Sequence record: NC_042013.1
Reading direction: 5' to 3' (one strand)
Length of the DNA: 64,000 bases
Below, piece after piece: positions 13,433 through 63,577 of this stretch. Each line of letters starts with the position of its first letter. Within the stretch, counting starts at the first letter, position 1. Below the pieces are notes generated by a model that saw nothing but the letters and a program-made list of their open reading frames with translations, was not told the origin of the DNA and did not search any database. The position numbers and the translations under genes are program-made.

Positions 13433-13732
13433 TTATTTTACATTTCCATAAAGCAAATCAAGCAACAGCTTTTCCTCTGCGCGGTCCTTGAAATCTGGAT
13501 TGTATCGATCAATAGTATCAATAGGTGCTTCTGTATAACCGTCTTTAATCTTTTCCCTCATTTTTTTAAGGGAAATATTATAGGTACGGTCATATTTGAA
13601 AGTCATCTTCTTTTCTTCACCGTTACGACCCCACGCACGATAATACTTATCGCCAGTGCGAATGATTGCCCAAAACTTATTACTTCGCGGACTTTTGTAA
13701 TAAAGAAAATTTACAATCTCAAATTTACTCAT
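13433..13732 (-). CDS. WGR-domain protein
   Basis: SNKFWAI...YRAWGRNG motif. Confidence 0.7.
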   Translation of the reverse strand: MSKFEIVNFLYYKSPRSNKFWAIIRTGDKYYRAWGRNGEEKKMTFKYDRTYNISLKKMREKIKDGYTEAPIDTIDRYNPDFKDRAEEKLLLDLLYGNVK

Positions 13733-14120
13733 TTAAAATCTCCATTTTTTCTGTTAGCACGCTAATTTGTTCTTCTGGTTCATATATCTCAGTCAATTTT
13801 GTTGACACGATAGTAAATTGAATCTTTTCGGTTTTCGATGGTTGCGATTCTGAATTTGTACTCAGTACCATTCTACAAATTGCTCCTTCAGGAACCAAAT
13901 TCCAAGGAGTTATAGACATTACACTAATTGAGTCTTGATGGCTATCAAAGATAAATTTAAAATCATTGAAAGGAATGAAATCGCTTGAAAATTCAGACGA
14001 GAAACCATTCCACCCCCATTCAATTTTATTTGATTTGAATATAATCGACCGTACTCTCTTTTGAGAGTATATATTTGTTAAAAAATTAACAATCTCTTTT
14101 TTATATTCAAGATTTTCCAT
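13725..14120 (-). CDS. SDhhP-family small protein, block A
   Basis: FSSDFIPF; start chosen at MENLEYKK (ORF track start 14171). Confidence 0.7.
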   Translation of the reverse strand: MENLEYKKEIVNFLTNIYSQKRVRSIIFKSNKIEWGWNGFSSEFSSDFIPFNDFKFIFDSHQDSISVMSITPWNLVPEGAICRMVLSTNSESQPSKTEKIQFTIVSTKLTEIYEPEEQISVLTEKMEILNE

Positions 14121-14508
14121 CAAGATCAGCCAATACCGCATCCAAAAGTTCAGGGTTCTTTTCAAGTTCACGGCGAAGACGTTTCAAACGATTCTCTTCA
14201 CGCTTTTCCGCAGCTTTTTTAAGACGCTTCGTATTTTCCTCTACGCGCTTACGTTCTTTTTCAACATCAGCAGCAATCAACTCTTTAATAGATGTGATAC
14301 GCTGATGTACAGAGACCGAATCCTTCCTCAAAAGAACAGGATAACCTTCTGTAGCTCTATTAAACAATCGATACAGATTGTTCTTCAAAAAGTTGTACTC
14401 TTCCTCGGTAATTGTTTCCCAATCACTGATAGAATTGATCGTTTCAACACTATTCCACTCATCATCATAACTGGACGAGGACGCCATAAAAATTTTTACC
14501 TCTGGCAT
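14107..14508 (-). CDS. Hypothetical protein with coiled-coil C-terminus
   Basis: RBS AAGGAG; EKERKRVEE..KKAAEKREE. Confidence 0.75.
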   Translation of the reverse strand: MPEVKIFMASSSSYDDEWNSVETINSISDWETITEEEYNFLKNNLYRLFNRATEGYPVLLRKDSVSVHQRITSIKELIAADVEKERKRVEENTKRLKKAAEKREENRLKRLRRELEKNPELLDAVLADLDGKS

Positions 14509-14542
14509 TCATAATCTCCTTATAAGGTTTTTTTAAAGAATA

Positions 14543-14842
14543 CTATTCAGTATCAATGTTGTCAATACTCAAAATCTTTTTAAAAAATTCTCTGTGATTT
14601 TCACCATCAGGTGTTATGGTTAACCTGAAAGTTCCATCCCATTGATACGCATCAAAATAATAGGCGTCGACGTAGAAATCACAGACAGGTATAAGATCGG
14701 ATAGTAGTGGACCATTCGTATATGCAACGTTCTGACAATACATCCAACCACGTTCTTTATCATACCCAAACCACGAATTGGTATATGGACGACTGGTATA
14801 TTTCAAAATAAGGTCAATGATAATATCTTTATAGTCATCCAT
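14543..14842 (-). CDS. SDhhP-family small protein, block A
   Basis: LLSDLIPV. Confidence 0.75.
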   Translation of the reverse strand: MDDYKDIIIDLILKYTSRPYTNSWFGYDKERGWMYCQNVAYTNGPLLSDLIPVCDFYVDAYYFDAYQWDGTFRLTITPDGENHREFFKKILSIDNIDTE

Positions 14843-15152
14843 CTTTTGTTATCTCAAAATACCTACCAAATTTAGTAAAGTATTGTTCGTTATATTTGCG
14901 CTCATACTTGTTCCAAAAAGAAATAATTGTACCATTAAACGAATGTCCAAGAGTCATATCATCCAAAACACCATTCACATCAAGATAAGGAAATAGATCA
15001 GAAAATTTATATTCAGTTTCGAGACTGAAATTCTTGTAATTGACCGACCATTTACCATCTTGATAATAAATCAACAAGTAATTATTGAAGTTTCTTCTCA
15101 ATATGACAATAAGTTCTCTTTGTAAATAACGCAAATATTCTTCGTCAGTCAT
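14835..15152 (-). CDS. SDhhP-family small protein, block A
   Basis: KFSDLFPY; MTDEEY N-terminus. Confidence 0.75.
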   Translation of the reverse strand: MTDEEYLRYLQRELIVILRRNFNNYLLIYYQDGKWSVNYKNFSLETEYKFSDLFPYLDVNGVLDDMTLGHSFNGTIISFWNKYERKYNEQYFTKFGRYFEITKDG

Positions 15153-15161
15153 GCATCACCA

Positions 15162-15443
15162 TCACTTTTCCTTTGGAAATAATATTTCAACGAATTCATC
15201 TATTGTGTATCCAGCATTATCCGTAAATACCACCAATTCTCTTTTAGTCGTTAAGGCTATATTAATATCCATCATAAAAGGATAAAAGTCAACGAATGGT
15301 ATGATATCAGTCAGAATAATAGACCTAACATAGTTACCGCCGTATAATACCCACGATTCTCTAAAGTAAGCGACCTTATAATCATCAGTTATCATTTTAT
15401 GCATAAAGTTCAATACGTCTTTGGTATATTCTTTATCAGTCAT
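15162..15443 (-). CDS. SDhhP-family small protein, block A
   Basis: ILTDIIPF; MTDKEY N-terminus. Confidence 0.75.
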   Translation of the reverse strand: MTDKEYTKDVLNFMHKMITDDYKVAYFRESWVLYGGNYVRSIILTDIIPFVDFYPFMMDINIALTTKRELVVFTDNAGYTIDEFVEILFPKEK

Positions 15444-61910: not shown

Positions 61911-61925
61911 ATGGTTATTTTATTA

Positions 61926-62201
61926 TTATTCTGTTTTTTGCTTTGCAGACGCTGACCAGAACTGGCGTTGCAATATTTCGTTTCTTGAAAGACCAAAGTC
62001 ATCTGGTGTTTCTGTTTCTTTTTCAAATACCGCAACGGTGGATTCCCCGACAACCATCTGATGACTTAGACGATATCCGGCCTCACCCAACTCATTGAAT
62101 TGCCGTTGCACGTCTGCGATACCTTTTGTCGTGGCATCATTCATAATCACATTTCGATAATTAAACATATTACCATCCCCCATTTTCAGCATGCAGAACA
62201 A
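61926..62201 (-). CDS. Small protein, DUF4177-like
   Basis: QFNELGEAGYRL...VFEKE; true start probably MFNYRNV. Confidence 0.5.
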   Translation of the reverse strand: MFCMLKMGDGNMFNYRNVIMNDATTKGIADVQRQFNELGEAGYRLSHQMVVGESTVAVFEKETETPDDFGLSRNEILQRQFWSASAKQKTE

Positions 62202-62385
62202 CCAATTGCGGTTGTTGTTCAGGTGCGTATTCTTTTAGAAATTCAAGATGTTCCATTGCTTTTTCACGAGCCTCCTCGATTCCACGATCATATTGAACAG
62301 CGAACCACGTTTGAATAGAACCCGGTCCAAAACGTTTTTCACCTTTAGGCCAATATACAGAAATAGTATATCCAACAATTTCCAT
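62170..62385 (-). CDS. Hypothetical protein
   Basis: Coupled ORF. Confidence 0.65.
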   Translation of the reverse strand: MEIVGYTISVYWPKGEKRFGPGSIQTWFAVQYDRGIEEAREKAMEHLEFLKEYAPEQQPQLVVLHAENGGW

Positions 62386-62603
62386 TAAAAAATCCTTTCT
62401 ATATAATCAACAAACGATTCTTCATAGAACCGATATTTAATTCCGTGTCGATCTTCATATCCAACTAAATTAGTGTCTACCATAAACACTATCTTGTTCA
62501 GAGGAATAAAGGAAGTAGTTTTCGGAATTATATCTGAAATACTTGATACCACATATTCAACCGATGCGGTTTGTTTAATATTCCATATTGCAATTTTAAT
62601 CAT
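62385..62603 (-). CDS. SDhhP-family small protein, block G
   Basis: ISDIIPKT. Confidence 0.75.
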   Translation of the reverse strand: MIKIAIWNIKQTASVEYVVSSISDIIPKTTSFIPLNKIVFMVDTNLVGYEDRHGIKYRFYEESFVDYIERIF

Positions 62604-62851
62604 CCAGAAACCCTTTCAAGGAATTCATAGAAATCCTCATTTCTTTGTTTATAATACCAAATATGGTTATACCAAACACGTATGTGATTAATGTCGAACT
62701 TTACTTCATTGAAACGTGGATCGAGAACGAAAGGGATAACATCAGTCAATGATTCATAATCAGCCATAAAAACGTTAGGACTGGACATAACCACGCCCTT
62801 GCCGCTAACATCAATGACTATATTCTTAACCATTTCGTCTATCGTCATCAT
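62600..62851 (-). CDS. SDhhP-family small protein, block G
   Basis: MTIDEM...LTDVIPF..EDFYEFLERV. Confidence 0.75.
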   Translation of the reverse strand: MMTIDEMVKNIVIDVSGKGVVMSSPNVFMADYESLTDVIPFVLDPRFNEVKFDINHIRVWYNHIWYYKQRNEDFYEFLERVSG

Positions 62852-63066
62852 CCAAAAACCTTATCCAGAAATTCATAAAAGGTTTCATCATCATTACGCT
62901 GTATAACACCACCTTGAGCAGCACATCCAATAAGTTGATGTTTTATAAAAAACACGTAGTTGTTAATCGAACTAATTTCACTCGTTTTCGGTATGACATC
63001 TGAAATATCCGATATTTCATATGGATAACTTCTTTGAAGTTCGTGATCAAAAATATGTACTTTCAT
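62848..63066 (-). CDS. SDhhP-family small protein, block G
   Basis: ISDVIPKT..ETFYEFLDKV. Confidence 0.75.
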   Translation of the reverse strand: MKVHIFDHELQRSYPYEISDISDVIPKTSEISSINNYVFFIKHQLIGCAAQGGVIQRNDDETFYEFLDKVFG

Positions 63067-63305
63067 TTTCTAGCAACTCTATCTAAAAAACTATAAAAAT
63101 CTTCGGAGTGTCCTTTGTAATGCCATCTATCACCGTAAAAACATCTAATACCCGTCCCTATTTTTACTACCGTAAAACGTTCATCAATTACGATAGGAAG
63201 AACATCCGATATAGAATTATATGTTTCCATATCCCGATGGCGACTACTGAAAATGACTTTATCAGCTTTAACCTCAATTATCAAACCTGCAAATAATGTA
63301 TTCAT
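63063..63305 (-). CDS. SDhhP-family small protein, block G
   Basis: ISDVLPI..EDFYSFLDRV. Confidence 0.75.
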   Translation of the reverse strand: MNTLFAGLIIEVKADKVIFSSRHRDMETYNSISDVLPIVIDERFTVVKIGTGIRCFYGDRWHYKGHSEDFYSFLDRVARK

Positions 63306-63577
63306 TTTCCTAAAACCCTATCGATAAATTCATAGAAGGTTTCACCGTGATTAATCATAGTCAATGACCCGTAGCCGGTATCAATGCCTGCTAATCTTGA
63401 AGCAACAGACAAATAAGCAAAAACAATTTTATTATCATCAAAGGTAAACGGAATAAGATCAGAAATATGACTTCCAGAAAGACGATATGAATTCGTTCCA
63501 ACCCCGGTTGCATAACACGAATTATCCTTGTAGTAAATTACAACCGGTATGTCGTTGGAGAATTCAAAAAAATCCAT
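63302..63577 (-). CDS. SDhhP-family small protein, block G
   Basis: ISDLIPF..ETFYEFIDRV. Confidence 0.75.
   Translation of the reverse strand: MDFFEFSNDIPVVIYYKDNSCYATGVGTNSYRLSGSHISDLIPFTFDDNKIVFAYLSVASRLAGIDTGYGSLTMINHGETFYEFIDRVLGK

Follow-up and report, generated by a model that had tools for sequence, protein, structure and literature searches.

A lineage-specific family of at least 131 small paralogous genes in the Agrobacterium jumbo phage Atu_ph07

Introduction

Large eukaryotic DNA viruses carry multigene families, among them the tandem MGF arrays of African swine fever virus and the poxvirus families of ankyrin or Bcl-2-like proteins, which consist of divergent small non-structural paralogues that are largely conserved between strains and probably act on the host. 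The SUKH superfamily and similar polymorphic-toxin immunity proteins also occur as tandem divergent genes, encoding proteins of approximately 100-150 residues that share one fold. Both arrangements resemble the locus that we describe here in Atu_ph07, a 490-kb Agrobacterium jumbo phage. With the eukaryotic-virus multigene families it has in common tandem arrays of divergent small paralogues; however, it differs from them in showing no sequence relationship (none of their Pfam families matches any member), in its bacterial host and in its larger number of copies relative to genome size. With the SUKH immunity arrays it shares runs of divergent small genes lying side by side, but Atu_ph07 is a lytic phage, there are no adjacent toxin genes and no Pfam immunity family is matched.

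Among phages, the closest described case is that of Bacillus phage G, in which a zinc-ribbon protein has expanded in a lineage-specific manner to approximately 35 copies and the expansion was called 'unprecedented' (PMC7824862). There, as in Atu_ph07, small proteins have been multiplied in a single jumbo phage, but the Atu_ph07 family has roughly four times as many copies, a different fold and no metal-binding Cys/His pattern. Neither PMC7824862 nor the Atu_ph07 genome paper mentions the family. It may be the largest set of paralogues so far reported from a phage, and it must account for a good part of the 390 'ORFans' of Atu_ph07.

Results

Seven arrays of small genes lie in the window

The window, by which we mean the whole 64,000-nucleotide stretch that was analysed, matches record positions 248001-312000 of Agrobacterium phage Atu_ph07 (MF403008.1 / NC_042013.1) with 100% identity. 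A preliminary description made from the sequence alone had reported about 75 small ORFs in seven blocks, filling approximately a third of the window. All 75 exist, with its coordinates, counts and strand borne out, and their measured coding share is 23,571 nt, or 36.8%. The blocks and the features associated with them are as follows.

13725..20670, minus strand: block A, 20 family genes, the most divergent subfamily (ORFs, motif)
14107-14508: non-family ORF inside block A
20700..20727, minus strand: sigma-70-like promoter candidate, 11/12 matches, TG-extended -10 box (consensus match only)
21607..28389, minus strand: block B, 21 family genes (ORFs; collinear orthologues in the related lineages L007, L008 and L018)
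23483-23866: non-family gene inside block B
30419..32597, minus strand: block C, 7 family genes of a subfamily shared with block B (hhalign, orthologues)
48778..49508, minus strand: block D, 2 family genes, both clustered with block E by phmmer
51607..55159, minus strand: block E, 11 family genes, immediately downstream of tRNA-Gly and tRNA-Met
55235-55309, minus strand: tRNA-Gly
55646-55723, minus strand: tRNA-Met
57542..57568, minus strand: terminator-like hairpin at the 3' end of block F, with convergent genes on either side (consensus match only)
57553..59980, minus strand: block F, 9 family genes (ORFs, hhalign F-G)
62385..63577, minus strand: block G, 5 family genes, the first part of a 22-member array

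The array begun by block G runs beyond the end of the window to record position 316969, and a conservative census of the whole Atu_ph07 genome yields at least 131 members, with matches to 0 of 5,080 decoys; group-specific profiles raise the count to 142-151, and our overall upper estimate is about 149. Hence the earlier estimate of family size holds for the window, but the genome-wide total is nearly double. Counted in bases, the family amounts to 8.4% of a genome that is among the largest of cultured phages, and it is equivalent in number to approximately one fifth of the annotated ORFs, the longest same-strand array containing 41 genes. Its products are soluble, mildly acidic proteins of approximately 100 residues (median length 103; median pI 5.1; a TM-like segment in 2 of 131), and the eight long members scanned (140-177 aa) possess no recognisable additional domain. 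In the deposited annotation, 32 of the 75 window members are missing and a further 16 are truncated, and it is because of this under-annotation that the pattern was missed by comparative surveys.

The genes are protein-coding and under purifying selection

The packing of the blocks fits the tandem, translationally coupled organisation that had been proposed for them: of the 75 start codons, 71 either overlap the preceding stop or fall within 20 nt of it, the overlap being of 4 nt in 31 cases and of 1 nt in seven. Pooled dN/dS values, obtained with two relatives, are 0.32 and 0.29 for the family genes and 0.24 and 0.235 for their neighbours, and full-length family genes are predicted on metagenomic contigs by independent gene callers. 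The family genes are real, protein-coding and subject to purifying selection. That so many of them (32/75) are absent from the deposited annotation might suggest non-functional ORFs, arising either as chance frames in AT-rich DNA or as decaying selfish duplicates. This explanation is hardly credible, since it is already contradicted by the dN/dS of approximately 0.3, by the intact collinear orthologues held by three lineages, by the absence of any decoy match in the family searches and by start-stop coupling.

A central segment is the sole element conserved across the family

The motif [ST]-D-h-h-P, on which the preliminary description was founded, occurs in its strict form in 42 of the 75 window ORFs, where 0.39 would be expected by chance, and is not found in the 13,189 residues of the non-family ORFs; the remaining members carry looser forms. 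The pattern h-x-[DEN]-h-h-P is met in 59 of the 75, and also in 7 of 67 non-family ORFs, and two hydrophobic residues followed by proline are kept in all 75. In block D, histidine replaces the second hydrophobic residue.

Aligned family-wide, conservation is limited to a seven-residue central segment in which the proline is invariant (100%), aspartate occupies position -3 in 83% and serine or threonine position -4 in 75% of members, and columns -5, -2, -1 and +1 are hydrophobic in 89-98%. The motif keeps a constant position in the proteins, with a median of residue 52 (interquartile range 46-58). Its proline is encoded by all four codons (52/38/29/12 among the 131 members) and its serine by all six. 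The codons being so varied, conservation acts on the protein, in agreement with the protein-level selection suggested previously, and conservation at the DNA level is excluded. Block B additionally has the N-terminal signature ascribed to it, in that at least 90% of 24 B and C members share a tryptophan.

Relationships between the blocks

An iterative profile search seeded only with block B picks up members of blocks A, C, E, F and G, and none of the decoys scores better than E = 10. Two pairs of blocks are homologous across most of their length, namely B and C (hhalign probability 96%, E = 1.2e-9, 81 columns) and F and G (probability 96%, E = 7.9e-9, 62 columns). Other pairs are joined through approximately 17-36 columns around the motif, B-DE being the exception (88 columns, P = 3e-4); the links of the block A profile to DE, B, C and G are weak (P = 6e-5 to 5e-4), and groups A1 and A2 align over only 18 columns (E = 6.9e-4). 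Masking the seven motif residues causes cross-group profile scores to fall to the shuffled level. Similarity between subfamilies thus rests almost entirely on the motif, and the residual signal is weak but significant. Across nine groups, Pro-anchored hydrophobicity profiles outside the motif give r = 0.23, a value that none of 500 nulls reaches (0.03 +/- 0.04), and with the motif removed matched halves outscore mismatched halves (C-C, p = 1e-5; N-N, p = 0.01). Pairwise links at the phmmer level also chain the groups, tying two F members to B and C, two A members to D and E, and one F member to G.

AlphaFold2 models of moderate confidence were obtained for a block B member (22892-23170; pLDDT 78, with a mean of 91 over residues 41-50) and for a block G member (63302-63577; pLDDT 72), representing the most distant subfamilies. 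In both, the secondary-structure elements follow the same order, the motif being modelled as a short helical turn that follows the N-terminal strands. Significant structural neighbours (Foldseek against PDB and BFVD) are other Atu_ph07 proteins only, with TM-scores up to 0.74; the F/G model gave no significant structural match, its own paralogues included (best E = 0.035).

The loss of cross-group detection upon masking, together with the short alignments of 17-36 columns between most block pairs, is what would be expected if several unrelated small-protein families had converged on one short motif. We nonetheless regard convergence as quite improbable, given that protein length, motif position and tandem organisation are all shared within one genome, that residual similarity is significant when the motif is excluded, that chains of pairwise links run between the block groups and that the order of elements is identical in the two models. 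The common scaffold envisaged earlier is upheld only in part: B-C and F-G share homology along most of their length and weak residual similarity extends beyond them, but the other pairs are mostly linked by the motif, and masking brings their scores down to the shuffled level.

Ancient duplicates are retained as individual orthologues

Outside the motif the sequences are, as first described, highly divergent: paralogues share a mean identity of 17% and a maximum of 44%. Neighbouring pairs are more similar than distant ones (21.6% versus approximately 17%), and the family is a lineage-specific expansion by tandem duplication. Tightly packed, collinear family genes are found in three related metagenomic lineages. 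In the close relatives L007 and L008, blocks B and C are preserved gene for gene and one-to-one; in L018, collinear reciprocal-best orthologues exist for 25 of the 28 B and C genes, at a median identity of 52%, and the three positions without an orthologue are still occupied. Between orthologues the flanks are evenly conserved (51-55% identity) and the motif more so (71%). Every family copy persists in related phages as a separate orthologue.

These data do not favour the accordion-like duplication invoked in the preliminary description. No recent duplicates are present, the maximum paralogue identity being 44%, and the copy number of blocks B and C is stable across relatives (one-to-one in L007 and L008; 25/28 in L018); the duplications being ancient and the copy number stable, a genomic accordion is therefore not supported. 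The family helps to explain how jumbo phages use their extra DNA, which in Atu_ph07 goes mainly into ancient duplicates of a single small domain that have since diverged.

The family is confined to Atu_ph07-like phages

Searches of Pfam-A, NCBIfam and PADLOC with ten representatives, all 24 A1 and all 14 A2 members and eight long members returned isolated single-member matches only (E >= 0.003), none of which recurred. PDB sequences searched with the A1 and A2 profiles gave best E-values of 0.23-0.55, and the block B model gave a best E of 2.9 against the PDB with Foldseek; the Pfam and PDB searches, which covered several anti-defence families, produced no match. A search of PHROGs at E up to 0.1 left eight of the ten representatives unmatched. 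Two of 14 F/G members matched phrog_19845 (PHROGs v4, function unknown) over the full length with a best E of 4.5e-6, members of the other blocks tested did not match it, and the block D representative matched phrog_21640 weakly (E = 0.019). The initial failure to recognise a known family is thus reproduced by Pfam, NCBIfam, PADLOC and PDB, the PHROG match being to a group of unknown function.

An exhaustive profile search of 1.84 billion representative proteins yielded 33 matches, of which 30 are Atu_ph07-like. The other three, long proteins of 2928, 1438 and 1582 aa, are repetitive proteins containing many copies of a short motif-like string and were rejected as spurious. A search with the F/G profile detected Atu_ph07-like contigs only, and among GenBank phages and IMG/VR the family locus is present in Atu_ph07 alone. 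Salicola phage SCTP-2 possesses a homologue of a neighbouring virion protein, with no small-gene arrays around it. The family is restricted to the Atu_ph07-like lineage.

Family members are not found among published virion proteins

The proteome of purified Atu_ph07 virions comprises 131 proteins (PMC6102473, Table S5), whose gp numbers we placed on coordinates via molecular weight. None of the 131 is a family member; this is incomplete proof of absence from virions because the proteomics relied on the deposited annotation, in which 32 of the 75 window members are missing and 16 truncated. The location of the genes could be taken to indicate that their products help to assemble the elaborate 'hairy' virion, for instance as chaperones of its many fibre and whisker proteins, or form minor structural parts of it. 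Indeed, block A lies directly downstream of a virion cluster ending at gp329 (9634-13389), virion genes are interspersed among the blocks, and the N-terminus of gp325 (311-2449) weakly matches the block B profile (14.5 bits). That match is, however, within chance range, the loose motif being present in 7/67 non-family ORFs, and runs of 20-41 genes are unlike the usual layout of one helper per fibre. With 0/131 virion proteins in the family, such helpers are improbable and a virion role is disfavoured.

Discussion

The lack of family members among the published virion proteins and the soluble, acidic character of the family are compatible with an intracellular role. We tentatively favour, at slightly less than an even chance, a reading in which more than 100 small soluble intracellular binder proteins are built on one scaffold, each modulating a particular host or phage protein. 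The members would share a small alpha/beta fold whose structural keystone is the central segment, a capped turn joining an N-terminal beta-meander to a C-terminal beta-plus-helix part, and the remaining surface would vary between copies and stay constant within each orthologue. An infected cell would thus receive more than 100 different small binders, each most likely targeting and modulating one host or phage protein in the course of host takeover or counter-defence. Stable one-to-one orthology is unusual for counter-defence sets and atypical of fast-turnover counter-defence islands, and counts against a counter-defence role. With over 100 variants of one scaffold, a keystone common to all and copy-specific, orthologue-conserved surfaces, the family would constitute a natural library well suited to work on structures and interactions.

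One short invariant element with flanks that are paralogue-specific and orthologue-conserved may also bring to mind a set of adaptors or receptors, in which all members would dock on one common hub through the invariant segment, exposed for the purpose, and use the variable remainder to pick targets. The hub could be a phage Clp/AAA+ chaperone-protease component or a host hub protein, and Atu_ph07 is indeed annotated with an unusually large range of Clp and chaperone proteins (Clp ATPase subunits, ClpP, a Clp adaptor, ClpB, DnaJ and Hsp20). Nevertheless, this link is one of co-occurrence in one genome only. Furthermore, hydrophobic residues fill four of the seven motif positions, and the block B model places the segment mid-domain, in its better-predicted part (mean pLDDT 91, residues 41-50), so that it resembles part of a core more than a linear docking peptide. 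An adaptor set is therefore unlikely, though not negligibly so.

It is tempting to speculate further, at correspondingly longer odds, on a combinatorial form of targeting in which more than 130 small receptors dock on a single hub, perhaps the phage Clp/AAA+ machinery, each delivering or blocking a different host protein. Were this so, bacterial viruses would possess a counterpart to the substrate-receptor gene expansions seen in giant eukaryotic viruses, and no larger paralogue family would be known from a phage.

In the favoured reading, the arrays would probably give rise to polycistronic transcripts whose genes are translated in a coupled manner. The preliminary description had placed the blocks under early-type promoters; this is not substantiated, as sigma-70-like sites show no enrichment relative to shuffled sequence (110 versus 97.7 +/- 10.2; 88 versus 75.1 +/- 8.1), and a convincing site lies directly upstream of block A only. 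That candidate immediately precedes the first block A gene, is followed by a Shine-Dalgarno-like GGAG and is kept in the relatives L007 and L008. An 8-base T4-type late-promoter box has 5 matches against 12.3 expected, a count on which we base no conclusion. The terminator-like hairpin of block F has a 10-bp stem with five GC pairs and a T-rich tail.

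Gene content and genomic distribution

The window matches Agrobacterium phage Atu_ph07 at 100% identity and corresponds to 248001-312000 of the record. All 75 ORFs that the preliminary description placed in seven blocks of it exist, every one on the minus strand, and its estimate that they fill roughly a third of the window is borne out at 36.8%.

Block A, 13725-20670, minus strand, 20 genes
Block B, 21607-28389, minus strand, 21 genes
Block C, 30419-32597, minus strand, 7 genes
Block D, 48778-49508, minus strand, 2 genes
Block E, 51607-55159, minus strand, 11 genes
Block F, 57553-59980, minus strand, 9 genes
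Block G, 62385-63577, minus strand, 5 genes

The tandem, coupled arrangement also stands: 71 of the 75 starts overlap the preceding stop or sit no more than 20 nt from it, with a 4-nt stop-start overlap at 31 of the 75 genes. The strict form of the motif, [ST]-D-h-h-P (h, hydrophobic), occurs in 42 of the 75 members and a looser form in 59; the strict count compares with 0.39 by chance and with none in 13,189 residues of non-family sequence, and two hydrophobic residues followed by Pro are kept in all 75. The varied synonymous codons described earlier were likewise found, the motif Pro using all four codons and Ser all six, so what is under selection is the protein, not an element of the DNA.

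An iterative pooled profile run against all Atu_ph07 ORFs, with the genome taken as ten separate loci, recovered 131 members at E <= 1e-3 and none of 5,080 shuffled and reversed decoys. Addition of group-specific profiles raised the census to 142 members at 1e-3 and 151 at 1e-2, with decoys still at zero; this last total includes one locus-boundary duplicate and a doubtful match to the virion protein gp325 (712 residues, window 311-2449). The gp325 match, to the block B profile, is weak (14.5 bits); it covers residues ~77-121 of the N-terminal region, around a string resembling the motif, and could be chance. Across the 131 members, the motif Pro lies at a median of residue 52 (interquartile range 46-58) of 103.

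Composition of motif columns in 131 members (position relative to the motif Pro)
Position -5: hydrophobic, 93%
Position -4: Ser/Thr, 75%
Position -3: Asp, 83%
Position -2: hydrophobic, 98%
Position -1: hydrophobic, 98%
Position 0: Pro, 100%
Position +1: hydrophobic, 89%

Family members cover 41,286 nt, or 8.4% of the genome, and are concentrated in two regions of the record: 261-317 kb, on the minus strand, and 363-424 kb, where most are on the plus strand. A 22-gene array that extends past the window end begins with block G. Members beyond the window lie on both strands between record positions 312477 and 449038 (loci L002, L004, L005 and L006), and a few single members occur at about 22, 73 and 169 kb.

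Arrays beyond the window (record positions)
312-317 kb
363-371 kb
376-380 kb
384-389 kb
397-403 kb
417-424 kb

By the conservative profile count, the 131 copies in Atu_ph07 exceed the ~35 copies of the zinc-ribbon expansion in phage G, which was termed 'unprecedented' (PMC7824862). When 1.84 billion representative proteins were searched exhaustively with the profile, only 33 matched, 30 of them 28-100% identical to window ORFs; the other three, which were repeat proteins, were rejected as spurious. Matches to the F/G profile fell only on contigs of 492-498 kb or fragments of such contigs, and a search of GenBank phages and IMG/VR found no carrier other than Atu_ph07 itself.

Authenticity of the genes

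Atu_ph07 is a lytic jumbo myovirus of 490,380 bp infecting A. tumefaciens C58; its genome paper gives 714 ORFs, including 390 ORFans, and a coding density of only 83.6% (PMC6102473). In the GenBank/RefSeq annotation, 32 of the 75 window genes are missing and another 16 are cut short, at least six of these so far that the motif is lost; at window 30331-30456 a short plus-strand ORF is called in place of a family ORF. Such gaps fit the low coding density; they also count in favour of the rival reading that the ORFs are non-genes. Evidence from relatives speaks against this alternative. Three related lineages on metagenomic contigs, represented by L007 (from ENA, 497,883 bp), L008 (a contig from Logan) and the more distant L016-L019, share the layout of the window, and full-length genes of ~95-118 residues were called there by independent gene callers. 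Every gene of blocks B and C has an intact one-to-one orthologue in L007/L008, with pooled dN/dS of 0.32 and 0.29; the non-family genes beside them give 0.24 and 0.235. Even in L018, 25 of the 28 B and C genes have collinear reciprocal-best orthologues (median identity 52%, against 65% for 18 neighbours), and family-sized genes are still there at the remaining three positions. The family is mentioned neither in the genome paper (PMC6102473) nor in a comparative jumbo-phage study (PMC7824862), and a search for later literature on it found none; it was probably overlooked because the record omits or truncates so many of its members.

Relationship among the subfamilies

The expectation of similarity across all blocks held in part. 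In pairwise phmmer searches, two F members connect to B and C, two A members to D and E, and one F member to G. In HMM-HMM comparison, B and C are homologous at full length (E = 1.2e-9, 81 columns), as are F and G (E = 7.9e-9, 62 columns). The remaining pairs give P = 6e-5 to 2e-2 in alignments of 10-88 columns around the motif; controls, made from unrelated families or by reversing alignments, reach 0.006 at best, with most >0.1, and are worse than most block pairs, the four weakest pairs (B-F, C-F, C-G and DE-F) lying within the control range.

A rival explanation is that the motif arose by convergence, and leave-one-group-out profiling illustrates its appeal: with the motif intact, between 3 of 12 and 19 of 22 held-out members were recovered at E <= 1e-2, whereas after masking of its seven residues no member passed that threshold and only one reached E <= 1, scores being those of shuffled sequences. 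Signal outside the motif is nonetheless present. Pro-anchored hydrophobicity across nine groups gave a mean r of 0.23 against a null of 0.03 +/- 0.04, a value that no null among 500 reached; once the motif had been removed, N-N (p = 0.01) and C-C (p = 1e-5) matches beat N-C, the only individually significant pairs being B-C and F-G+. Given this residual signal, together with the same size, motif position, arrays and chains of links, common ancestry of all subfamilies is very likely; they have diverged almost to the detection limit.

Predicted structure and possible function

AF2 models of a B member (24-sequence B+C alignment; pLDDT 78, pTM 0.65) and a G member (14-sequence F+G alignment; pLDDT 72, pTM 0.53) have the same order of elements: a short N-terminal helix, three or four strands, a brief helical turn formed by the motif, one to three more strands and a C-terminal helix. 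Foldseek found no match in the PDB (best E = 2.9), and its significant matches in BFVD were to other Atu_ph07 proteins only (E ~5e-4, TM 0.52-0.74); the G model gave sub-threshold matches, several again to Atu_ph07 proteins. A single, novel-looking fold common to the family is plausible rather than established.

The members are soluble (a TM-like segment in only 2 of 131) and mildly acidic, with a median pI of 5.1 and a net charge of -4; Ile, Phe and Tyr are abundant in them, Ala and Gly scarce. An assembly or structural role is one alternative. When gp numbers in the virion-protein table (PMC6102473) were mapped onto the annotation, with molecular weights agreeing, the window genes represented were gp325-329, 377, 381, 390, 393, 394, 407 and 408; no family member, from the window or elsewhere, is in that list, which was drawn from an annotation without 32 window members. 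What emerges is a very large, ancient and lineage-restricted family of small soluble proteins, undetected in virions and encoded in translationally coupled arrays, in which one central segment is invariant and the surfaces differ from copy to copy but are kept between orthologues. The favoured reading, an inference, is that the invariant segment is the structural keystone of a shared fold and that each copy acts inside the cell by binding particular proteins of host or phage. A docking motif for one common hub is a less likely reading.

Mode of evolution

Accordion-like duplication had been suggested and is not supported, there being no recent copies and the same copy number across lineages. 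Paralogues share a mean identity of 17% (adjacent pairs 21.6%, maximum 44%). Orthologues are 71% identical in the motif and an even 51-55% in the flanks, and this uniformity implies that each copy is constrained over its whole length in its own way. The family is old, stable and subfunctionalised.

Mosaic divergence was seen at three sites relative to L007/L008, otherwise ~95% identical relatives: window 23863-24210 (37% identical there, 74% in L018), 37572-37895 (~61% against 70%) and 37895-38227 (46% against 95% in the more distant L018). This pattern suggests allele exchange between lineages.

Regulatory, non-coding and neighbouring features

Early-type promoters had been proposed over the blocks, but sigma-70-like sites are no commoner than in shuffles. 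One strong candidate, with an extended -10 box, immediately precedes block A, and relatives have kept it. Block F is closed by a terminator-like hairpin, and two tRNA genes stand at the head of block E.

A 937-bp interval separates blocks B and A (window 20671-21606, taken in minus-strand orientation) and contains ~580 nt that fold far better than shuffles (z = -4.1). This single-copy stretch is ~96-97% identical to L018 over the ~520 nt available, against 33-77% at the protein level for flanking genes; Rfam gave no match for it, and other GenBank phages lack it. It may represent a large structured non-coding RNA or an element exchanged recently.

The Atu_ph07 genome seems prone to tandem paralogy in general. 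A second such family, at window 33727-38227, encodes membrane proteins that are 100-237 residues long and contain several hydrophobic segments; phmmer links four members, and the family is conserved in relatives. A tRNA-Val (40496-40570) adjoins three tandem paralogues (40613-41901) of ~148 residues each, unannotated in the record. A 139-residue protein (44232-44651) and the virion protein gp394 (47035-48501, 488 residues) share an internal repeat and form a phmmer cluster. At record positions 44090-53137 (loci L011 and L012), about a dozen genes (gp55-65) encode similar-sized products of ~29-32 kDa, and virions were found to contain most of these.
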